Origin: Chlorokybus atmophyticus
Taxonomy: Eukaryota > Plantae > Mesostigma and Chlorokybus algae
DNA length: 44,641 nucleotides
Direction: 5' to 3'
Assembly: GCA_009103225.1 (NCBI GenBank)
Contig: RHPI01001611.1
Coordinates: forward strand, 1-44,641
A model generated the notes under the pieces. The model made no database searches. It was not told where the DNA came from and saw only the letters and a list, made by a program, of their open reading frames with translations. A program made the position numbers and the translations under genes. How positions within the stretch are numbered: the first letter of the stretch is position 1; each line of letters begins with the position of its first letter. Positions 8,960-38,025 of the stretch are shown here, piece after piece.

Positions 8960-10758
8960 CAGGTTTGTTGTAGAATGCTTTGGCACCATTAAAGACTTCT
9001 ACTGCCTCCGTTGTTCTCAGCTTTTCCAGTATCCACCCGGGCCCGTGCCCACTCTTGTACATCAGTCTATTTGAAACTGCTAGGGATAAAGCGTGGCACC
9101 CTAGAGCCACAGCCAGCTCTTTGACCTTTTCATCGAGCGTCTTCAGTGGCAGCCTCTATCTCAGCAACTCACACGCAGAAACCTCTTCAAGATTCTTCAG
9201 CTCCAGGACATCATGGTTGCCACCCATTCGCTGACGAGCAAGCAGTATGACATGGCAAGGTCCTTAAGTCGGCAGGTACTTTACATACTGCCGGTCATCG
9301 TCCACGTCGTCCAACACTAAAAGACAAGGTGTCTCCAACTGTTCTAGTGCTGTCCGGATCTCCAACACAAAGTTGAGGTGTTTGTCCTGATCGAGGCGCA
9401 AAATGCTTGGGAGCCACGACCTGCAACATCAATAATCAATGATTTGTTGCTCAGCTTTTTGTTAAGGTTGAGTTCTTGCACACCTGCAACATACGATGGG
9501 CAGGGACATATAGAGCTGCCCAAGAGAGCCAGCTGAGGCTCTTACCTTGTTTTATCACCACCCAAGTCAATACCTAGTGGTTTTGCCAACCTCAGACAAC
9601 TGTTGTGCAATGCCTCCTTGCTGGCATCGATCCAGAGCAGCTTGTCGTACTGGTGTCGGCAGTTTTGCACATACTTCAATGCCAGCTGCGCCTTGCCTGC
9701 ACCGCCCATGCCTTGGATGCAGACGCAGCTACAATTACTCAACTTGTGACCAAGATCTGCTGGATCTTTACCCCTTTCCACAAATGCATGTTGTCACGGT
9801 ACGGCGTCGTGTTGTCTCCCTTCTCTGTGGTGCACGGCCGTTTGAGCAGCCAACAAACATCCAGGACAATGGCACGGGCGTAGGTGTTCTCGTAATTGTC
9901 ATATTCCTGCATGACCTTCATGCATACAGTTGCAACGTCTTGAACCGTTGTTTTCCACACGTCTTCATCCATGCTGCACTTTGTCCACAGCTTCCCCCCG
10001 TGATGCTCCCAGACTAAACCTGCTGAGACATTGTCAGACGCAGCTACAATTACTCAACTTGTGACCAAGATCTGCTGGATCTTTACCCCTTTCCACAAAT
10101 GCATGTTGTCACGGTACGGCGTCGTGTTGTCTCCCTTCCCTGTGGTGCACGGCCGTTTGAGCAGCCAACAAACATCCAGGACAATGGCACGGGCGTAGGT
10201 GTTCTCGTAATTGTCATATTCCTGCATGACCTTCATGCATACAGTTGCAACGTCTTGAACCGTTGTTTTCCACACGTCTTCATCCATGCTGCACTTTGTC
10301 CACAGCTTCCCCCCGTGATGCTCCCAGACTAAACCTGCTGAGACATTGTCAGATGCAGTATGGTCAGATTGAGGGACCCAAGGTTCACTAACTCCCGGTT
10401 GGTCACAAACACTATCGCATTGTACCTGCTTTACTCTCACTGCATCGATGTCGTCAAGGGTGACACTATAGCAAACTGGCAAACAGTGTTCCCGGTCCAA
10501 AAATGTGCGGAGCTCTTGCATGCAATACTTGTTGGTCAAGAACCCGGGAGACAGCACCACAACACCATATGTTGCTTTCTTCATGGCTGAGTCTATCCTT
10601 TTAGGCGAAAAAATGCCCATTCGCAATGACGTATCGTCAAAGAATACCTGTAACTTCTGCCTCTCAAGCTCGTCCTTCAACCATGCACAAAAGCCCCTCT
10701 TTGTGTCTGGAACCCGATGAGAAAGAAAGACGTCGTAATGCTTATCTTGACCAGCCAT
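8960..10758 (-). pseudogene. TIR-NB-ARC pseudogene of the TIR-NB-ARC-TPR (TNP)-like type, C-terminally truncated
   Basis: TIR motifs YDVFLSHR, VFFDD, VVVLSPGF and YCMQEL. P-loop CIQGMGGAGKAQLA, LLWIDAS, Walker B LLVLDDV (about 9300-9330) and GLPL-equivalent GCHALSLAV. A frameshift precedes the P-loop, in-frame stops occur near 9265 and 9200, and there is an internal 315-bp duplication. Confidence 0.8.
9720..10349. repeat. 315-bp tandem duplication (2 copies)
   Basis: 9720-10034 matches 10035-10349 with one difference seen (cttctc vs cttccc). Junction microhomology CAGAYGCAG. Confidence 0.92.
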
Positions 10759-10915
10759 GACTCCACCTCACACTGACAGTCCGCCACCACAATACGCCAC
10801 CGTCAACGGTGACGCAGCGCTGCGCCAGGTCAAACGAACAATGTGAGGGCGCCCAGTCTAAACACAAGCTTGAAGTGAGTGGTTAAGCTGACACAAGCTG
10901 CTAAGCTAAACTTCA

Positions 10916-11600
10916 CACACGAAATATTTTCCACGGACCAACCCTGGTCCGCACGTACGGACCAGGACCAAAACGCCAAGGCGGCTTGGGGTCCGGACCA
11001 GGGTCGCCCTTCTTGGTCCGAATGCGGGGACCATGGCTGGTCCAAACAGTACGTAATTGTCCCACGGTCCCCCGAATTCTAGGCCAGCCCTGGTGCCGGT
11101 TGAACCGACAAAATTCAGACCGAGGCTGGTCCTTTTGCATGGACCATTATTGATGAACGAAGTGCGTCGCACGTCAATGAAGCCATGGTCCGAAGCGACG
11201 GACCATGGCTGGCGCGCTCTTATAAACCCATGCATGGCGTGACCGCCGGTCATTAAGTTGAATGCGTTTGGGCCGGCTGCAGCCGGACCAGCATGAAGAA
11301 AAACCGATGATGGTTAAAAGTGCGGCAATGTAACTATGCTTTGGTGGCTAACTGCGGTCAGCCGCAGCAACTAAGCCGCAGCTGACCGCGGTTAGGCCGC
11401 TGCTGCTGGTGGCCTGGCGGGCGGCCTGGTACTCCACACAAAGAGCACCAGGCCACGCTGCAGGCCTGGTCATGCTGGCCTGGTAGCGACCAGGCCAGCA
11501 TGACCAAGGCTAAGGGCTGCGCAGGCGCCAGGCCATGGCTTCTGGCGCTGCCACCGCTGCCCTGGCACCGACCAGGCCATGACGAGTAGATGGCCATGAG
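10916..11600. mobile_element. Opposite end of the CAC/GGWCC TIR transposon family, inserted about 160 bp upstream of the TIR start codon; right boundary uncertain
   Basis: Begins CACACGAAATATTTTCCACGGACCA, inverted relative to 262-439. Internal hairpins at 11181-11210 and 11467-11506. Confidence 0.6.
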
Positions 11601-11875: not shown

Positions 11876-12499
11876 ACAACGACACACCTACCATCTGAAT
11901 CAATCACACAAGTTATGAAATATACGAATGCCACCTAAACACAGTAAAATGTGGCACATGCGCGTAACTCTCTTGCACACCTAGAGGACAACACCACAGA
12001 ATCACAATCTGGTACCTGTTGCCTTGGTAGCTGATTGGTAGCCAGCTCCTCACCCCATTGTCATTGCTGCCACACCTTGGCTGATTTGCGCAATTTGCAC
12101 GCGCGTATGTGTGTAACTATTGGTGTGCATAAGCGCGGCAAGGTGCAAGCTGAAGCGACTGTCAACGTCTGCATGTGAGTACACAGAAGTGAAATGTACT
12201 TGCGGACACATGCATGTATGCAGGCTTGCCTATACAAGCTGGCACTTTCAGACATCCACCTATGACTTTTGGAATTTAATGACCACGTAATGCTGGCTCA
12301 TAGGCCACACGGGTCAGTGGTCTATTAGCCAGCTTATAGCATGCCGTTTAAGCCACACTAGTCAGTGCAGTCCTTGAGCCAGCCTCATAGGCTGCACTGG
12401 ATAGTGTAGCCCATGAGGCTGCACTACCATAGCTGGTAGCCTAGCAAAAGTGTGTAGGTGTGCACATGCATGCACGCATGACAAAGAGCACTTGCATGN

Positions 12500-13033
12500 C
12501 ATGACCTTCATGCATACAGTTGCAACGTCTTGAACCGTTGTTTTCCACACGTCTTCATCCATGCTGCACTTTGTCCACAGCTTCCCCCCGTGATGCTCCC
12601 AGACTAAACCTGCTGAGACATTGTCAGATGCAGTATGGTCAGATTGAGGGACCCAAGGTTCACTAACTCCCGGTTGGTCACAAACACTATCGCATTGTAC
12701 CTGCTTTACTCTCACTGCATCGATGTCGTCAAGGGTGACACTATAGCAAACTGGCAAACAGTGTTCCCGGTCCAAAAATGTGCGGAGCTCTTGCATGCAA
12801 TACTTGTTGGTCAAGAACCCGGGAGACAGCACCACAACACCATATGTTGCTTTCTTCATGGCTGAGTCTATCCTTTTAGGCGAAAAAATGCCCATTCGCA
12901 ATGACGTATCGTCAAAGAATACCTGTAACTTCTGCCTCTCAAGCTCGTCCTTCAACCATGCACAAAAGCCCCTCTTTGTGTCTGGAACCCGATGAGAAAG
13001 AAAGACGTCGTAATGCTTATCTTGACCAGCCAT
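12500..13033 (-). pseudogene. Duplicate TIR-domain fragment (part of the 2275-bp duplication)
   Basis: Translation matches the N-terminal part of ORF 10054-10758 and breaks at the N at 12499. Confidence 0.8.
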
Positions 13034-26839: not shown

Positions 26840-28008
26840 GCTAGCAGATATCAACAAACAACCCCCATATCCCCAAGTTGGGGGCGGTTCCCAAGTTGGG
26901 CACATTTACCCTAGTGCTCCCGAAATCTTGCTACTTTAACATGTCATGTACAGCATGATGTGCTTTTAAGTCATGTCGTGTCATGCCGGCATATGCATGA
27001 AGCAACTCAGGTCTCATGCGGGCTCCATTCTGGGCCAGAGGATTCTGGCGCATGTCACTTGTGCTCAGACTTGTTTGCTTGAGTTGCCGGCGGCACGGCT
27101 CGGTCTTTGAAACCTCAAACACCAGAGTCCACAGCAAGTCAGTCCAGTCTTCGTGTCAAAAATTTTTAGAGGGCGGCATTCTTACTACCTACCTTGTTCT
27201 CTTTGACCGGCGTTGCCAGGCCGGGGCGACAAGTTTCGTGTCACATGTCACATGTAGCCGCTGCGACAAAGTCAAGCTTACCGCAAAGACTTTCTCTCCT
27301 ACCTCTCATAGGAGTTTTCGCATTATGTTGAGCCCGCTTGTTGACGCTGTGGGCGGGAGGGAGGAGGGGGCGGGCGGCGAAGCCTGAAGCCTAAGCCTGG
27401 TAAGAGGTTGTTGTGGTTTGCTAGCCGGAAGGTGCAAGACGCCGTCAGTGCTGCCTGTTTGTGTACCGACCAGGGCAACAGCTTGCTCAAGCTTGGCTGA
27501 CATGCACACATACCGGCGTAGCAGTGTACTGCTTGCGTTGCTTGACGCTAGCCGCTGTAGCAAATCTACGGCTTCTGCATTTTGCCTTCGCGTTGTTTGA
27601 TGTGGTCGCTCACGTTCAGCCATGCTGTAGACATGTCCATAGTTGCCGCCATCATGCTCGCCAGCTGAATTGAGCAATGCCATGCTTCATGCTCGCTAGC
27701 TTATCGCAGTAGTGCCATGGCCAGTCCGACTCGCCGTAGCTTGACTGGGCTGGTATTTGGTTTAGGACAGCTTACCCCTCCACGTTGATCTGACTGGCAA
27801 GCGTACACACATTGAGTAAGTCTGGCATGCAGTCTAGTTTGCAGGAGCGTTTGCACTGATGATGCGTGACGTCGCAACAGCTCCAAGGCAATCTGATTTG
27901 TTGAACATCGATTGACCATCAACACCCTCTGGCATGCGCAGTGCCCGCTGTACGAAGGGGAAGGAGCAAGAGAGCGCATGCACGCGTGGGGCTCATCACA
28001 ACCTACAC

Positions 28009-31000
28009 ATGGCTGAACAATCGCCTCCCTGGCCCACCATCCTCGCCTGCCTGGTCGGCTTGGTTGGTTTCCTGGTTGGACTATACACATTTGTGCGCAA
28101 CAGGGGAGATGCTCGGAACAGGCAGGCAGCAGAGCTGTCTATCAAGTACGATGGTGTTTATGACGCGATGGATGTTATCAGGCACTACCAGGACAAACAG
28201 GACTTCTATGTCGACTTCAAGCAGAACCGGCCACCGGAGATTGAGAAGGCTCGGATCAAACTGAGAAACTTCTGGGATTGGGTTACAACGCAGTATGAGC
28301 GCGGTTCCATCTCCAGGGACATTCTTTCTTCCACAAGCGACTGGCTTGCGAGAGGCAACAACTACCGGTTGCTGGTGGAGCCCATCGACATTGCCAACTG
28401 GTATTCTCCAAGGGGGGGAAATTTTCATGCCTCCACCGGCAAGCATTACCTTCGCCTCTCGGTTGCCGAGGCTGTTCTGCGGCCGCGACGTTATTACCTG
28501 CTGGAGCAGGCATATCGCAATGCGTATCCCGAGAGGAATGAGAGCTCGATTGATTGCGCATTGCAGGAGCTCATCACTGCTGGGGTTACAGGGGCCCGGC
28601 AACCCGACGATGACCTCAGGCAGCAGGCTCATCAGCTCTCCAATGACAAAGCGGAGTCAGCGACAATGATTAGCAACCTGGCACTCCTATCAAATGACCT
28701 GGGCAAGCACAGTGCCCCAGTTGCAAACCGTATTGGTAAGCTGGTGACCAACACAAACAATGCCATTCCAAACGTGCTTGATGTGTCTTGTGTTGATATG
28801 TATTATGCATTTGGGGTCAAGGTTCGTGTTGATGCTGTGCAAGTCATTCCTTGTTCACCAGCTGAGTGCAAGATGGCAATTCTGTCAGTCGTAAGGCCAT
28901 AAGAACTGACTGACAAGTCGACTCGCAGAGAGGGTCGACTCGCTGTCAAAGCCTACTCATCACACACACTGCGACGTTTTCCTTAGCTATACAGAACCTG
29001 ATATTAAGCCGGATTTCATCGACAGCTTGCATCGCATTTTCAACGAAGTAGGTATCACCTGCTTTGCTAAGCTCAGCTTGCAGCCCGGGGAAACCAACCA
29101 AGCATGGGATGTCATCAGTGCCAATGTACAATCCGCTCGCATAAAGATACTTGTTCTATCTCGTGGCTACGTGGACTCCTGCTACTGCCTGGAAGAGCTG
29201 CGCGCCATGATGGAGAATCCAGACAACATCATGCCCATCTTCTATGACAAAATTGGCGACCTGAATGCCATGACAGTACAGGAAAGCATTCACAGGTGCG
29301 CGTGTTCTACTGTCGTCGCCAATCAATCAGCAAATATTCCTGATGGCCAACATGTTGTGTGTTTTCAGCACATGCCAGCGCAGTGGATACCTATTTGTCC
29401 AGAAGGAATTTGAGTACAATGAGGCTTGGAAGAAAGCATTGGATATAACGGGCCGGATGCGTGATCAGTTCAAGTAAATTGAGTCGTCACTTGTGTACGT
29501 TTGCTGTGGTGTCATGCCTGGTTTCTGACGTTTGGTCTTGGTCAGCACCACGAGTGCTTTAGCTGAGCAAGTGGCGAAAGACGTGCTGAACAAGTTACGT
29601 CCCCCTGTCTTGGAAGTCGCCATGTATCTGGTGGACATTGATCGCCGCGTTGAAGATGTACTCAAGAAGTTGAGTGCTGCTACCGCTGGAAGCAAGGTCG
29701 TCATGCTGGGTCTTTGGGGCATGGGCGGCATTGGGAAGACCACACTTGCAAAGGCGATATATAACAAACTGTACAACAATTTTGCTGGCAGCTGTTGCGT
29801 TGTAGACGTCAGGACAGAAGCTGGTCAAGAGAAGCTGGTGCAGCTGCAACTGCATATGCTTCAACAGCTGGCTGAGTTTCCCTTGATAAATGCATCCCAG
29901 TCGATTGCTGAAGGAAAGGCACTTCTGAGAAATCATTTGCAAAAGAGAAAGGTGCTGCTCTTTGTTGATGACATCTGGAGCGAGGATCAGAAAGAAGCCT
30001 TGCTCGGTCCTTTCAATCTGGAGGACGCCAACCCTCTGTTGGGTGAAGGAAGTTGTGTTCTGGTGACCTCTCGTAACCGCAAGTTGCTGAGGGGGCATGA
30101 GAAGCATACATTGGTGTGGGAAGTGTTACTGCTCGACTATCAGTCTGCTAGAGAACTGTTCTGCCAGTATGCCTTCAGGTCGCATCCAGTGCCTGTACAG
30201 TTGGAGCCAATCGTGACAAATATCATCAGGGCGTGTCAGGGCCTGCCGCTCATGCTTGAGGTCGTGGGCTCCTTTCTGGGCAAGCGCAGCAGCAGTGATG
30301 GGCAGATTTGGAAGGACACACTGGATCAACTACAGCAGGTGATGGTCGTCGAAGGTACAAGTGACAACCGATTGTGGAATTTATTGATGCAAAGTTATGA
30401 TAGGCTATTGCCTGATCTACAGCATGTTTTTCTCGACATCTGCTGCTTTGCACTGGGGAAGAACAGGGACGTTCTGCTTCCTGTGTGGGGCAAGCGTGCA
30501 CGATTGATCCTGAATCACCTGCTGGAGTTGTCTTTCATTCGCTTGGTACCAAGCAAAAGTCTGCATGCTGGTCATTGCTCGTCAGCTTTTGCTGGCAATG
30601 CTATGGTCCTTTTAGTACATGACCAGCTCCGCGACATGGGGCGAGCGATTGCCCATCTTGCCAACCCGCGCAAGCACATCTGGATGTTAAAGGCCATAAG
30701 CGACATACCTCAGAACAAGGTATGCGCGTGTTCCATGCATGGTGCTCTTCTGAGTTGCTGAAATTGCATGCGTGCATTGCGCAAAACAGAATTGTAGTCT
30801 AGAAACTCGTCACAACTTATGTATGCTGGCAATAACGGCTGTTGCCCACACATGCTGTTCAACGCAGGACTACGAGTTTGTCGAGACTTTGTCTTATGCT
30901 GGTGGCAACTGGAGTGAAACAGTATATGGCATGCCCTTCATGCCTAGTCTCCGCTTGCTAGATCTTGGCACAATTGATTGGGATGGTGCATTTCTCCGGG

Positions 31001-32241
31001 GGCTCCCCAAAGAGCTGGTCTATCTGGAGTGGGAACATCCACGCTGTTCAGCCTTGCACACTATGCTGCGCAATGTCGCGGCATGCACAAAGTTGGCTGT
31101 ACTGGTCGTAGGACAACCCATCGACAATGGATCAACTCTGCTGATCGAGTCCATTGGAAACCTCAAGGCGCTGCAAATCCTGGTGTTGAGGGGCTGCCAA
31201 TGTCTGCAAACAGTGCCTAACGAGCTTGGCGGGCTTGCTAAGCTACGGACTCTAGTTCTCACCAACGCTGGTTTGCGCATGCTCCCCCCGTCCGTTGAAA
31301 AACTCATGGCTCTGCAAACGCTTGATCTGAGCGGGTGCAGCAGATTGGAGGCGCTGCCGGAGTCCTTTGGCAAGCTCGCTGCTCTCCAAGAGCTGTACCT
31401 GAGTAAGTGTGTCAGCTTGGCAGCGCTGCCAGAGTCCTTTGGTGAGCTCGCTGCTCTGCAGACGCTGGACCTGAGTAAGTGTGTCAGCTTGGCAGCGCTG
31501 CCAGAGTCCTTTGGTGAGCTCGCTGCTCTGCAGACGCTGGACCTGAGTGAGTGCGGCAGCTTGTTTGTTCTGCCGAAGTCCTTTGGTGAGCTCGCTGCTC
31601 TGCAGACGCTGGACCTGAGTGAGTGCCGCAGCTTGGTGACGCTGCCAGAGTCCTTTGGCAAGCTCACTGCCTTGCAACAGCTGCAACTGAACGAGTGCGG
31701 CAGTTTGGGGGCGCTGCCGGAGTCCTTTGGCAAGCTCGCTGCTCTGCAAGAGCTGTACCTGAGTAAGTGTGTCAGCTTGGCAGCGCTGCCAAAGTCCTTT
31801 GGTGAGCTCGCTGCTCTGCAGACGCTGGACCTGAGTGAGTGCGGCAGCTTGTTTGTTCTGCCGGCGTCCTTCGGCAAGCTCACTGCCTTGCAACAGCTGC
31901 AACTGAACGAGTGCGGCAGTTTGGGGGCGCTGCCGGAGTCCTTTGGCAAGCTCGCTGCTCTGCAAGAGCTGTACCTGAGTAAGTGTGTCAGCTTGGCAGC
32001 GCTGCCAAAGTCCTTTGGTGAGCTCGCTGCTCTGCAGACGCTGGACCTGAGTGAGTGCCGCAGCTTGGTGACGCTGCCAGAGTCCTTTGGCCAGCTCGCT
32101 GTTATTGACAAGTTGGACCTGAGTGGATGTGGCAGCTTGGCGGTGCTGCCGGAGTCCTTTGGTGAGCTCATCGTTCGTCGAGAGCTGGACCTGCGCTTGC
32201 CACTTGGCGGCGCTACTGGAGTGCTTTGGCAAGCTTGCTGA
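28009..32241 (+). CDS. TIR-NB-ARC-LRR (TNL-like) receptor with N-terminal TM segment and unknown domain; 5 exons, about 1290-1300 aa
   Basis: Proposed exons: 28009-28890, 28931 (or 28952)-29295, 29369-29473, 29546-30719, 30868-32241. The last three introns are GT-AG with consistent phases; the first intron is inferred. TIR CDVFLSY...YCLEEL, P-loop GMGGIGKTT, Walker B VLLFVDDIW, VLVTSR, GLPL, FLDICCF, VHDQLRDMG, then 24-aa LRRs. Confidence 0.85.
31312..32175 (+). repeat. 12 x 72-bp LRR coding array
   Basis: Consensus LQTLDLSECxSLxxLPESFGxLAA; several units are near-identical at the DNA level. Confidence 0.95.
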
Positions 32242-33676
32242 CCAGGGACAGCTGTATGTCAGCGGGTACCCACACTTGCAGGTGCTGCTGGCATCAGCAG
32301 TCAGTACGCTGGCTCCTGCTGTTGCTGTTGATGATGCTGCAGCAGCAGGAGGAGCTGTTTAGCAGCAAGTATGGGTAAATGTCAGGTCTTCATTCATCTA
32401 CCACTGGACTCGTAGCTACTACAACAATAGGACAGAAGCAAGTACAGTGGCATGGCGGCACTGCCAAGAGCCTTATGTTGTCTTGCTGTTATTATTATTA
32501 TTATGTGCACAATGGACGTAGTCCGGTGCGGCAACTTGGCAGCGCTGTAGTATCAATGCCCCTAAACTGATCAACAAGTTAGCCACACACTGGAGCAGCT
32601 GCGTGGCAGGTATTGAAGTTACTGCTAATGGGTGGGGGTTGAGCATGCCTAGTGAGGTGAGAGTGAGAGTAGGGACATTGCCTGATGGTAACCAATGTGA
32701 TATAGTGATGTGTGTGGACGGCTGCCTGCATGCATGTGTGGCAATGCGGCAACAAAGTGCGAATGTCAACATGCATGATGCAGCACCCTGCATATGCAAG
32801 AACAGTGGCACAAGTAGTAGTATAGTAGCACCCTGCATACACATTCACAATTCGCAGCTGTTCAAGCGACGTGCAGACAGAGTACACACATACACATGTA
32901 CATATGTACTCAGTCAGCTCCAATTCGCCTTGAGTAACTGGCGGAAATAATGCCATAGCAGCTTCCATTCTCATGCCCCGGCAAGAAAGCTGACATGCAC
33001 ATGCTAACTTGTACACAAGCAAGCTGGCGCACACACCCACTTTCCTGCAATGACCGATAGGCGCAGACACGCTCGCACTCACTCTCTCATATGCCGACCT
33101 ACTATGTGCATACGCATCCTGACTGACACACATGAGGGTCATGTTTAGTCCCATACACTACACTGAAAGTACAGACATCCACTCCTGAACATGATCGTAC
33201 ACGCACACATTGGACATGGTGTGGAGCGCAGGTTGATGCTATGCCAGATAGGATGCGCTAACTTCTGTAAGCAGCGGTCTGAATGTCTGGCTAGCAGCCA
33301 GCCTCATTTGAGGTTGCACCGCCAGAGATGGCGGCGCTCAAGTCCACCTGCAGTCGCACAGCTGTTGCATGTCGAGGGTGCGAGCTGCGGCGTGGAATGT
33401 TGTTGTCTATAAGGTTGTCATGTTTTGCAATACTGCTACCAAAAAGAGTGGTAGGCGGGGATGGGACTTTGCCGTCAAGTGCTTGGTGCCGTGCATGCAG
33501 GTTTTAACCCAGAGCAGATTGTGTGGCGGTGCTAACCTCACAACCTCATCGCCACGACAGCAGCAGTCGACCTTGCTGGCTGGGGTGCGAGCAGCGCAGC
33601 CGCCAGGGCTGATGACGTGAAGTGCGGCTATCTGGTTGTGGCAAGGCATGGTAGCAAATGACTACTTAGCATTGGC

Positions 33677-33678
<2 letters not shown>

Positions 33679-33731
<53 letters not shown>

Positions 33732-33732
33732 N

Positions 33733-33827
<95 letters not shown>
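33679..33827. repeat. (GA)n microsatellite with a single N at 33732
   Basis: Seen directly. Confidence 0.97.
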
Positions 33828-33830
<3 letters not shown>

Positions 33831-33944
33831 TACATTACTTGCATGGTGTCTTCATTGCCATAGTCTCCACGCCTACTATTCTTCCTCGCTAACAATTGCA
33901 TGGGGGGCAAACATGTATTATACATAAAGGTAACTGTTGTAGTA

Positions 33945-34098: not shown

Positions 34099-37000
34099 CT
34101 ACTGATGAATTCCGGCAGCACCTTGTCGGAGCATCCGTTTAGGGAGCACACATTGCTTCAATTCAGCGAGCTGATCATTTCCAGATTCCGGCAGCTTCGC
34201 CAAGCTGCCGCATCCGTGCAAGGCCAGCGTCTTCAGAGCAGGGAGCTCGCCGAAAGACTCCAGCAGAGCCGCCAAGCTGCCGCACCCGCTCAGACTAAGC
34301 GTTTGCAGAGCCGTGAGATCTCCAACAGACTCAGCGAGCAAGCGCAAACCAGCGTTAGTGAGAACGAAAATTTGTAGCTTAGTAAGCCTGCCAAGCGCGT
34401 CAGGCACCTAGTGCAGACATTGACAGCCCCTCAGCACCCGGCCAGCGCCTTGAGGTCCAATATTCTCAGTCAGCAGCACTAAGACATGCTGCAGGACTTC
34501 TTCTGATCAGGACGAGCAGTTTTGTGCATGGAGCACCAGTAAAGTGCTCAAGGCTTCACAGCGCACACATGTTCACTCCAGATAGGCTCATTAGCCCGCC
34601 CCCCNNNNNNNNNNNNNNNNNNNNNNNNNNNNNNNNNNNNNNNNNNNNNNNNNNNNNNNNNNNNNNNNNNNNNNNNNNNNNNNNNNNNNNNNNNNNNNNN
34701 NNNNNNNNNNNNNNNNNNNNNNNNNNNNNNNNNNNNNNNNNNNNNNNNNNNNNNNNNNNNNNNNNNNNNNNNNNNNNNNNNNNNNNNNNNNNNNNNNNNN
34801 NNNNNNNNNNNNNNNNNNNNNNNNNNNNNNNNNNNNNNNNNNNNNNNNNNNNNNNNNNNNNNNNNNNNNNNNNNNNNNNNNNNNNNNNNNNNNNNNNNNN
34901 NNNNNNNCCCCCCCGAATACTGCCATCCCAATCAGTTGTGCCCAGGTCTAGCAACCGGAAACTAGGCATGCCATACAATGTGTCGCTCCAGTTGACAGCA
35001 GCATAAGACATAGTCTCGACAAACTCATAGCCCTGCATTCAACAGCATGTCAACTGTAGGCAACGTCCTTGTGTGCACCATACTTGTTGTAATAAGTTTC
35101 TGGACTGCAAGTTTGTACTGATTGCAGCAACCCTCGTAAGTCAGACAGAAGCAGCATGAGAAGGTGCAATGGAACACGCGCCTTGCACCTTCTGAGGTGA
35201 GTCGCTCATGGCCTTTGGCATCCAGATGTGCTTGAATGGAGACTCCCATCCGTTGTTCCAGTATAGTATAGTAGGACGTACATTTTGCAATCATTTGGCC
35301 CATGTCGCGGAGCTGGGCGTGCACTGAAAGGATGTTGTTGCTCGGTACCCAACGAATGAGGGACAAATCCTGTAGGCGATCCAAATACCATGATGCGAGG
35401 CTGGCCCACGCTGGAAGCGGAATGTCCTTGCCCTTTCCCAAAGCGAAGCAACAGTCTAGAAAAACTGGCCGTATTCTGCCAGTGGGCGATAGCCATTCGT
35501 AACTGAGTTTCAGCCTTTTCCACAACCGGTCTTCTTGTGTACTTTCGAGCCCCTCTGCCTCATGTAGAAGATCTAGTGCGTCTTCCCAATTCTGCACATC
35601 ACTGTTGCGATGCGTGCGGAGAAAGGAGCCCATGACGTCAAGTGAGAGCGGCAGTCCCTGGCACGCCGTGATGATGTTCTCCACAATTGACTTCAAGTAC
35701 CCAGGCACTGGATCCGAGCCGAAGGCGTGTTGGCAAAATAGATCTCTGGCGGGCTTATCGTTGAGCAGCCGCACCTCCTCCACCAACGTATGCTGCTTCT
35801 CCCCCTTGAGTAAGTTGCAGTCGCGAGACGTCACCAGCACACAACTGCCCTTACCAAGCAGAGGGCTGTCTCCCCACAGATTAAAAGGACCGAGCAGGGC
35901 GTCGTGTTGAAAAGGGCTCCAGATTTCATCGACAAAGAGCAGCACCTTCTTCTCTCGCAAATGATGTTTCAGAGTTTCCTTTCCTTCAGCAATAGTGTTG
36001 GATGCGTTAACGAAGGAAATATCAGTCAGCTGTTGAAGCATAAGCAGTTGCAGTTGCACCAGCTTTTCTTGATCAGCTTCTTTCCCGACCTCAATAAAGC
36101 AGCAGCTGGGTGCAAATTTTCTGTGCAGCTTGTTATAAATCGCGCTTGCGAGTACAGTCTTCCCAATGCCGCCCATGCCCCAAAGACCCAGCATCACGAC
36201 CTTGCCTCCAGCAGCGGCTTTCAACTTCTTGAGTACGTCTTCAACGCGCAAGTCAATGTCTACTGGGTATCTGGCAACATATAAAGAAGGGCGGTCTAAC
36301 TTTCTCAGCACGTCTCTCACCACTTTATCTGCTAAAGCAGTCCTGGTACTGAAACAGAGCAAACGTCAGCAAACAATGCATGACAACCGCAGCAAAGACG
36401 TACATCAGTGGCAACTGGACTCACTTGAACCGCTCAAGCCTTCGGCCTGTTTTTGAAAATGCATGATCCAACGCATTGCAATAAGCAGATTCATTCTGGA
36501 CAAAGTGCTTCCCACCATGCAGGCATGCGCTGAAACCAAAGAACATGTTGGCAACTGCCAAGAACATATTGGCAACTACCAGGAACATCCTGCTGATCCA
36601 CAGGAAAACCGCCCGCCAGCAAATACTTCTCTTTATTGTGGTACGCAATGTGTCAAAATCTTTGTCAAAGAAGATAGGCATGACAACGTGTGTTGAGTCC
36701 TCCATCATAATGCGCAGCTCCTCAAGGCAGTACCAAGACTCTCCGTAACGAGGAGACAGAACGGGCATCTTGATGCGTGCGGACCGTACATTGTGAGTAA
36801 TGATACTCCAGGCTTCATGAGTCTCCCCTGGCTGCAAGCTCAGCTCGTCTACGAAGCAGGTGATTCCAACTTTGATAAAACTGCGATGCAGATAGTCGAT
36901 AAAGTGGTCCTTGACCTCAGGCCCTCTATGGCTCAGGAAAACGTCGCAGGGACAATGAGGGATAGTCTTTGACCGCGGCACAATGTCTCCGTCTACGACG

Positions 37001-37224
37001 CGCAGGTTGACTGGTCTGTGGGCTCCTGGAGCACTGTTACTTGAGGGGAACAAGGTCTTGCAATCAGCTGGTGAACAAGGAAGTTCGAGTTGCACAGCAT
37101 TGACACGAGCCACAAACCACAACGCACACCAACGTGTCAAACACGTTTCGATAGTACTGTTTGTGTTGGTCACCAGCTTACTGTTGAGATTTGTACTGGA
37201 GGCCAACGTGTCCATTGCGACCAT
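34099..37224 (-). pseudogene. TIR-NB-ARC-(short LRR) paralog of 28009-32241 with a disrupted LRR region
   Basis: TIR CDVFLSHRG...YCLEEL, P-loop GMGGIGKTV, VLLFVDEIW, GLPL, VHAQLRDMG. In-frame TAG at 34408-34410 (CQCLH*VP versus CQCLQTVP in the paralog), indels at 34410-34600, and only about 3 LRRs. Confidence 0.82.
34605..34907. other. 303-N assembly gap flanked by C runs
   Basis: Seen directly. Confidence 0.98.
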
Positions 37225-38025
37225 AAGCAGGCTGCACCTTGGTGGCCTGCAGCCAGACAAACTCATACTGTCAGGAGTTTGCAACGCCTGTGACGCACAG
37301 TGACATGCAACGCATGCAACCACATATGCCATCATGTTCAGTAATAACTACATGGTGTTTGCCAGGGGAACGCCATGAATTGCACCAATCGCACACTGAT
37401 GATAGGAAGCGTGTGCTTGCTCTTCCAAAGCAAGTCGCTAGCCAGAAACCCCGTCCATACACTTCTTGACAATGCACCAAGCAAGCCCAACAGTCAGTGT
37501 ACAAGAACCATATACGGCAGCAGGCGAGTTCCACATGCAACGCCTCGCGAACGGCTACGCGTAATGATCTGCGGCCTAGCACAATAACAAAGTCATTCTA
37601 GTAAAGTGCTCGCGCGCTTGCACATGCCCTTTCACACTACGTTGCCAAGCTAATCTCCTGCCATAGCGCTGCCGTCCAGCACCAGCACCGCCACCATGCA
37701 CCGAGTGGCATGCATGTGTATCAAGCATGGTTTCCCTAAATGTGGCTGCCAGCTGGCATGCTGTGCTCGCCGCAAGCAGCGGCCGCACACGACCACAGAA
37801 AGTCGGACGGCGAGACGGCAACGCACCTTCGCCTGCTGCGATGAAGTCAGGCAGCCTTCAGCTGCGCCTGGCGTCCTTCCGCCCCGCCTCCCCTGCTGTT
37901 GTCCCCCAGCCTGTGCGGGGCGGCGTCGCCGTTCAGCTCCGACACCTCCAAGCCCCGCCCCGCGCGTTTCGCCGCTGCTCAGCGCTCGCTCTGGTGCATG
38001 CCACTCCGCTGCGCCGCGCCTACTA

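Follow-up and report, generated by a model that had tools for sequence, protein, structure and literature searches.

A gene for a predicted membrane-anchored TIR-NB-ARC-LRR receptor with a short EDS1-type EP domain in the streptophyte alga Chlorokybus atmophyticus

TIR receptors are far older than seed plants, and algal TIR domains moved into Nicotiana signal via EDS1; we know of no reader of TIR signals outside seed plants. The EP domain has been held to define the EDS1 family uniquely and to have arisen in seed plants (10.1101/572826; PMC9806590), and a 2026 preprint mentions reports of green-algal 'short EP-like sequences' and restricts robust homology to seed plants (10.64898/2026.05.20.726525). 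In the literature that we searched, whose coverage is incomplete, we found no description of fusions of EP to TIR domains or to NLRs (receptors with nucleotide-binding and leucine-rich repeat parts), nor, in the NLR literature searched, an N-terminal architecture of a transmembrane (TM) helix followed by EP. Here we describe a gene with this layout in a 44,641-nucleotide stretch of DNA from the alga Chlorokybus atmophyticus (GenBank assembly GCA_009103225.1, contig RHPI01001611.1, positions 1 to 44,641 of the forward strand; the whole stretch is called the window below). What is new at this locus is an N-terminal TM-EP unit on a complete, expressed TIR-NB-ARC-LRR receptor (TNL), together with the history of its capture.

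Several described systems come close. The EP domains of seed-plant EDS1, PAD4 and SAG101 (PF18117; PDB 7XEY, 7XJP, 8ZF0, 4NFU) share with the focal domain a helical fold of about 150 residues, as predicted for the latter, the signature motifs and a link to TIR signalling. Whereas the EDS1 family forms a separate heterodimeric hub, the focal EP domain is fused in cis to a TIR-NLR in a streptophyte-alga host, has a TM helix in place of the lipase-like domain, lacks the last 60-80 residues and does not keep the PAD4-type contact residues. TNL receptors such as ROQ1, RPP1, RPV1 and L6 have a TIR with catalytic Glu, a P-loop NB-ARC and a C-terminal LRR in the same order, and the focal protein differs from them by about 250 extra N-terminal residues with a TM anchor and EP. 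RRS1-WRKY and RGA5-HMA resemble it in that a non-canonical domain with free paralogs in the genome has been added to one of a pair of NLR paralogs; unlike those, the domain integrated here comes from a family that reads TIR output in seed plants, and there is no head-to-head helper.

The locus is one expressed Chlorokybus gene encoding a TM-EP-TIR-NB-ARC-LRR protein of 1248 residues. Contigs of three public runs, X1, X2 (from another study) and X3, were compared with the window, and those of X1 and X2 derive from RNA, because the introns are missing from them. A 925-nt contig (X1 record 3) matches 28470-28734, 28928-29292, 29366-29473 and 29546-29732 with 0 mismatches, and each stretch that it skips has GT..AG ends; its joint from 28734 to 28928, at a depth of 83.5 and with 255 letters on the shorter side, splices the TM-EP exon in frame to the TIR exon. 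An earlier note on this DNA, made from the letters alone, had supposed such a splice, with a separate gene at 28009-28902 as the alternative; the spliced contig bears out the former and rules out the TM-EP open reading frame (ORF) as a gene of its own. A second X1 contig extends through 29711-30717 and 30866-31250, and X2 independently confirms two joints downstream. The spliced frame is open through 1248 aa, the donor at 28736 and the acceptor CAG at 28928 restoring the TIR frame; an alternative intron at 28891-28928 was rejected, as it does not restore the frame, whereas the donor at 28736 does so and is confirmed by RNA. Upstream, X1 record 1 covers 27941-28212 with 0 mismatches and carries 48 extra letters, the last 20 of which match uniquely at 27379-27398, directly before the donor GTAAGA, and mark an exon of the 5' untranslated region (UTR). 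The focal reading lies in ORF 27934-28902 (+), with ATG at 28009 and stop at 28900-28902 in the ORF list and its translation; retention of intron 1 would extend it to 28902 as a 297-aa TM-EP protein. The gene has the following features:

27351-27399, + strand: 5' untranslated exon, start approximate; donor GTAAGA at 27400
27400-27941, + strand: 5' UTR intron, GT..AG; joint implied by X1 record 1
28009-28735, + strand: coding exon 1 (aa 1-242 and the first nt of codon 243), which holds the TM helix, the short EP domain and a linker helix
28033-28095, + strand: predicted TM signal-anchor helix, aa 9-29 (Kyte-Doolittle 2.47), containing G17xxG20xxxG24 and followed by basic RNRGDARNRQ
28096-28584, + strand: short EDS1-type EP domain, aa 30-192, from Pfam PF18117, PDB sequence matches, Foldseek and VIA
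28736-28928, + strand: intron 1, 193 nt, GTAAGC..CAG
28929-29295, + strand: TIR exon (Pfam TIR and TIR_2), CDVFLSY at aa 257-263
29369-29473, + strand: short exon with the TIR end and a linker; joints 29292 to 29366 (X1, X2) and 29473 to 29546 (X1), GT..AG
29546-30719, + strand: NB-ARC exon (Pfam NB-ARC E 5.7e-31; RNA contigs)
30868-32241, + strand: LRR exon (Pfam LRR families), stop at 32239-32241; joint 30717 to 30866 in X1 and X2

By its sequence matches and its predicted fold, the helical domain behind the TM helix is an EP domain of the EDS1/PAD4/SAG101 type. Pfam EDS1_EP (PF18117) matches aa 65-172 at E 1.5e-12 to 2.5e-12, scoring 47.3-48.1 bits where the cut-off is 23.1, and it matches all 53 of the 53 aligned relatives. 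A phmmer search against all PDB chains returned, at E<0.1, the EDS1 family only (PAD4 2.8e-8, rice EDS1 2e-6, SAG101 2e-4), in alignments that span FWD, YRxLVEPLDIANYY, HY and RPxRY; the focal domain carries FWDW (88-91), LVEPIDIANWY (122-132), HY (146-147) and RPRRY (158-162), and the core motifs of PF18117 are present as YRLLVEPIDIANWY at aa 119-132 and as RPRRY at aa 158-162. An AlphaFold model computed from the 53-row alignment has a mean pLDDT of 88.7, and the first 24 Foldseek matches in the PDB are EDS1, PAD4 or SAG101 without exception. In VIA comparisons the model reaches Z 17.5 with OsEDS1 394-557, 17.1 with AtEDS1 361-558 and 16.3 with AtPAD4 291-461, at an rmsd of 1.8-2.4 A to solved EP domains across 146-152 residues, and the next, unrelated fold scores Z 6.6. 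At the level of the predicted structure, one of the earliest-branching streptophytes is thereby shown to have an EP fold, attached to a membrane anchor and to a TNL that is intact and expressed.

The domain is a short form. It corresponds (model residues 30-192) to roughly the initial 70% of the EP domain of seed plants; the PF18117 match spans positions 16-112 of 211 and the structural match stops at residue 558 of the 623 of AtEDS1, and it falls short of a full-length EP domain of about 210-240 aa with C-terminal helices. The last EP helices are also missing in all algal relatives, and the seed-plant rows of the alignment go on with DSCFWA.... The domain ends near aa 192 (28584) and its exon at 28735; the end at 28620 given in the earlier note is arbitrary. 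Pfam finds no lipase-like domain in the focal ORF, where 29 residues, with the TM helix, precede EP.

The translation of 28009-28899 reads as had been quoted earlier: MAEQSPPW leads into hydrophobic PTILACLVGLVGFLVGLYTFV, RNRGDARNRQ comes next, and a helical domain with IKLRNFWDWVTTQYERGSIS follows. A single N-terminal TM helix before a helical domain, as then described, agrees with the 19-residue Kyte-Doolittle mean, which peaks at 2.47 at aa 11-29, the sole strong hydrophobic segment of the ORF, and the AlphaFold model has a predicted helix at aa 8-61. The eight residues before the TM helix are mildly acidic, and by the positive-inside rule aa 1-8 would lie outside and the remainder of the protein in the cytosol. 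The protein runs from this predicted outside tail (aa 1-8) through the TM helix (9-29), EP (30-192) and a linker helix to TIR, NB-ARC and the LRR array. A TM helix stands immediately before the EP domain in 11 other relatives from several clades as well.

The helical module had been taken for a DUF4760-like domain of bacterial origin. DUF4760 (PF15956) comprises small single-TM proteins of bacteria and phages, and what they have in common with the module is the layout, a helical domain of comparable size behind a TM helix at the N-terminus. The Pfam match is below threshold (16.7-17.4 bits against a cut-off of 25, E 0.005-0.008), covers the TM helix and the first helix, and touches 2 of the 53 relatives, the focal protein and its closest paralog, neither reaching the cut-off. 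PADLOC, PHROGs and NCBIfam gave nothing consistent, with scattered TM-driven matches only; viral fold models (BFVD) gave no match (best E 0.26), and neither did a shape search of the ESM Atlas (TM score below 0.4). With the signature EP[IVL]D[IV]A[ND][YW]Y, in a scan built on a 9-row core alignment, and with tblastn, no relative was found in 185,579 prokaryotic genomes (GTDB) or in IMG/VR. In an Atlas feature search a DUF4760 cluster (score 0.92) heads a set of 14 among the 30 nearest clusters, a neighbourhood that probably reflects the common layout of a TM helix plus a helical domain and serves as a lead only. The profile, fold and signature searches together largely refute the DUF4760 identity and the bacterial origin; what survives of the original proposal is an acquired helical domain behind a TM helix and spliced to the TIR exon, with the EP assignment from Pfam, PDB and fold accounting for the whole of that domain.

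Behind the EP domain, the TNL domains follow in order on one transcript joined by spliced contigs (Pfam TIR 2e-10, NB-ARC 6e-31, LRR_14 2e-48). The catalytic glutamate of the TIR NADase appears intact: E332, at 29195-29197, lies within SCYCLEEL, which aligns with the WCLxEL motif (CLEEL of ROQ1) in an alignment with the TIRs of RPV1, ROQ1, RUN1 and L6. The NB-ARC has its P-loop GMGGIGKT at aa 458-465 and LLFVDDIW (Walker B) at aa 537-544. Unlike in canonical TNLs, the LRR array is built of almost identical repeats of 24 residues, of the type LPESFGxLxxLQxLDLSxC. The final LRR repeat goes on in another frame, in ORF 32123-32362 (…LLECFGKLADQGQLYVSGYPHLQVLL…), which implies a 1-nt frame change near 32190, whether real or an assembly error.

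How did a TM-EP unit come to stand before a TNL? The window holds a second TNL, arranged tail to tail with the focal gene rather than as a head-to-head helper:

34099-37335, - strand: convergent TNL paralog without TM-EP (Pfam TIR and NB-ARC; blastn 70% identity)

Nucleotide homology between the two TNLs begins exactly at 28736 and runs at 70% identity across 2.3 kb, and a tblastn search with the ORF detects a single copy in the whole window, in keeping with the earlier view that the TM-EP module is an acquisition missing from the collinear paralog. Intron 1 has a homologue in the paralog, where it is N-terminal coding sequence and in frame (BLASTP aa 236-288, E 2e-8). At 36421-37335 (-) this homologue is in frame with the paralog's TIR domain, and an RNA contig contains it as well, connected to upstream sequence that is the paralog's own. 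The loose contig ends at 28736 and 28873, read by eye, are the paralog's own sequence, and judged from them the homologue appears to be transcribed unspliced there. Since the homologue is in frame and present in the paralog's RNA, the focal gene has made former coding sequence intronic, and a GT within the old TNL N-terminal coding sequence may have become the splice donor.

The source of the module points to the same genome. Searched exhaustively with HMMER, 1.84 billion representative proteins yielded only 59 relatives, the best of them Chlorokybus atmophyticus proteins. P0001 (258 aa) is 79% identical in amino acids to the focal protein over aa 1-224, and in a tree of the domain core the two are sisters (100/99) within a Chlorokybus clade with P0002-P0004; these putatively free TM-EP relatives, P0001-P0004, have 258-347 aa, and each has a TM helix before its EP domain. 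Contigs of a P0001-like paralog in X1, X2 and X3 are about 90% identical in nucleotides to the EP exon at 28026-28547 and probably come from a P0001-type TM-EP gene elsewhere in the genome; their depth is 474-1068 against 63-100 for the focal gene (5-12 times), contig depth being a poor measure of expression. The sequence of a loose end at 28005 is similar to that of the focal 5' UTR. Because identity to P0001 (79% aa, about 90% nt) exceeds that between the TNL neighbours (70% nt), the TM-EP exon with its 5' UTR would be a recent copy of a putatively free TM-EP gene, set before an older TNL. Measured against NLRs with integrated domains, the locus has an extra domain with paralogs in the same genome (P0001-P0004) and lacks a head-to-head helper NLR partner.

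Other features of the window lie around these genes. A 303-nt assembly gap of N at 34605-34907 falls within the LRR region of the paralog, and a long (GA)n-type microsatellite (which reads RERERE…) lies between the convergent TNLs at 33677-33850. Two ORFs at 10054-10758 (-) and 12362-13033 (-), about 2.3 kb apart, both start with MAGQDKHYDVFLSHR and are identical over their first ~178 residues; they resemble TIR-only tandem genes, and the second holds an N and diverges after the shared residues.

The same short EP domain recurs among Chlorokybus proteins, where it often follows a TM helix directly and is found in several fusions with TIR-fold domains. P0001-P0006 are 216-347 aa long, and of these EP proteins all except P0005 have a TM helix ahead of EP; the best ten relatives all exceed the Pfam EP cut-off and occur in several layouts, including small EP-only proteins. 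P0007 reads TM-EP-TIR-EP, and differs from the focal protein in having no NB-ARC or LRR; P0014 is SEFIR/TIR-EP and P0017 LRR-SEFIR-EP, so that EP is C-terminal behind SEFIR in the P0017 type, whereas in the focal gene TM-EP is N-terminal on a complete TNL. Beyond Chlorokybus, the seed-plant rows (Ginkgo, Taxus, Kalanchoe, Arabis) fall inside one clade of 16 rows (99/96), and the remaining algal short forms fall in several other clades; two short forms come from the trebouxiophytes Elliptochloris bilobata and [Myrmecia] bisecta and bear the UniRef label 'EDS1 EP domain-containing protein'. The yield of a metagenome scan was for the most part EDS1/PAD4 of seed plants, derived from host DNA (L011-L067), and only four algal loci were gained.

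L002, L003, L004 and L005 ([Myrmecia] bisecta), loci from outside Chlorokybus, have TIR or TIR-NB-ARC ORFs at most 6 kb away from an EP ORF. In L003 5088-11168, on a metagenome contig, a candidate lipase-EP gene (-) stands head to head with an EP-TIR gene (+, 9678-11168); in L004 569-12514 and L005 8001-16934, EP genes are 1.4-5.3 kb from TIR-only or TIR-NB-ARC ORFs, and L004 also has a TNL of 1019 aa as a single ORF. The Arabis alpina protein P0009 (2011 aa) has two lipase-EP units of the EDS1 family in tandem, fused to TIR-NB-ARC-LRR, and, if the gene model is right, would be an independent EP-TNL fusion in a flowering plant. A class-3 lipase-like region with GHSLGG intact and a short EP lie on the same strand in L008 6009-9527 (+), L010 3409-6849 (+), L003 8213-5211 (-) and L006 5188-8406 (+); each of the four aligns with Ginkgo EDS1 (P0022) in successive, collinear blocks. 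At L006, in Elliptochloris bilobata, whose lipase-plus-EP locus is on JALJOU010000074.1, NCBI annotates two separate genes. We regard L003, L006, L008 and L010 as candidate lipase-plus-EP, EDS1-like genes outside seed plants.

Why would a TNL carry an EP domain between the membrane and its TIR? Our preferred reading, drawn by analogy and given a rough probability of 0.45, is that the focal TNL is tethered to a membrane and that its EP domain takes up or passes on what its own TIR makes, likely as a pair of EP domains. The receptor would sit on the membrane with all its domains in the cytosol; ligand recognition by the LRRs would lead to oligomerisation through NB-ARC and to an assembled TIR NADase, and EP, lying between the membrane and the TIR, would serve as an adaptor or receiver, built into the protein, for the nucleotide signal produced by the TIR. 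Its partner would probably be a second EP domain, either of another protomer or of free TM-EP proteins such as P0001, in a pair that would mirror the seed-plant pocket between the EP domains of EDS1-PAD4 or EDS1-SAG101, with the TM helix replacing the lipase-like domain as the element that unites two EP domains.

We read EP as a receiver because candidate pocket residues can be mapped and because EP-TIR fusions recur. In Arabidopsis, pRib-ADP sits between the EP domains of EDS1 and PAD4, in contact with EDS1 residues D469, N472, Y473, T482 and R493 (10.1101/2022.04.01.486681). Aligned by eye, EDS1 D469, N472, Y473 and R493 would map to focal D127, N130, W131 and R161, and these columns are for the most part conserved across the family: D stands in 46 of 53 rows and N in 35, the third column is aromatic (Y, W or F) in 50, and the fourth is R in 37.

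Several observations weigh against this receiver reading. On the PAD4 side of the pocket, the focal domain has S, D, A and N in place of K379, K380, Y383 and F387 (alignment by eye), the loop with EDS1 K478 and T482 has a different length, and the kept EDS1-side residues sit in a core motif and may be retained solely because of the fold. Compared with seed plants, roughly 30% of the EP domain is missing at its end (Pfam 113-211; AtEDS1 559-623). At the level of the gene, the EP-TIR splice joint is present in a single run (X1), the listed mismatch-free RNA contigs do not visibly span 28212-28470, and the final LRR repeat is out of frame near 32190. The receiver mechanism draws on analogy and on the logic of domain fusion, and the recent capture of a free paralog fits the origin of an integrated decoy equally well.

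A more complete form of the receiver reading, in which the protein would unite the TIR-to-EDS1 pathway in one membrane-bound chain, the signal of its own TIR being bound by its own EP domain, paired with a free TM-EP protein, and triggering an output at the membrane, strikes us as tentative and somewhat doubtful. Rather unlikely, too, is that the module is an integrated decoy, an EP copy of a free TM-EP signalling protein targeted by effectors, which would detect effectors without transducing a TIR signal. It would suit a recent duplicate of a P0001-type paralog with higher contig depth, a sister TNL without the module and a location in a transposon-rich subtelomeric TIR/NLR cluster; against it, EP-TIR/SEFIR fusions in several layouts and algae point to a working partnership rather than a one-off bait, and the neighbouring TNL is convergent, unlike the head-to-head helper typical of paired NLRs with integrated domains. 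All 11 of 11 invariant or near-invariant family residues are retained in the focal EP domain, which is uninformative either way.

Less probable still is that EP is passive, and that the capture brought a membrane tether, a new promoter and 5' UTR, and perhaps an aid to oligomerisation. The strong TM helix with GxxxG is the most certain feature of the module, the 5' UTR seems to have been captured along with the exon, as the UTR-like loose end at 28005 suggests, and the EP domain is truncated; yet its core motifs are all intact following capture, and in the NLR/SEFIR proteins P0014 and P0017 EP is C-terminal, where it could not serve as an anchor. We consider it improbable that the locus yields mainly the 297-aa TM-EP protein through retention of intron 1, with the TNL fusion minor or non-functional, or that the gene is decaying. 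The ORF does continue through the intron to a stop at 28902, free relatives P0001-P0004 are of similar scale, and the frameshift in the final LRR repeat would fit decay; however, the sole focal-specific contig listed across the region is spliced, at a depth equal to that of the downstream exons, the unspliced-looking contig belongs to the paralog (loose ends 28736, 28873), and the 1248-aa frame is open with catalytic motifs intact. A second effector of DUF4760 type from bacteria or phages, suggested by the sub-threshold Pfam match and the Atlas feature neighbours, has a negligible chance given the absence of structural matches in BFVD and the Atlas and of prokaryotic or viral signature relatives in the searches above.

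The fusion places a maker and a presumed reader of TIR signals in one protein, far outside seed plants, and the questions of how TIRs signal without EDS1 and where EDS1 came from become testable on one protein and its TM-EP paralog. The focal gene adds an N-terminal NLR architecture to those known from the literature searched. If the single-chain pathway is true, green plants would have inherited the partnership of TIR and EP from their ancestor, the EDS1 of seed plants would have been derived later as a soluble protein with a lipase-like domain in place of the TM helix, and the collinear lipase-plus-EP loci of trebouxiophyte algae (L003, L006, L008, L010) would be intermediates.

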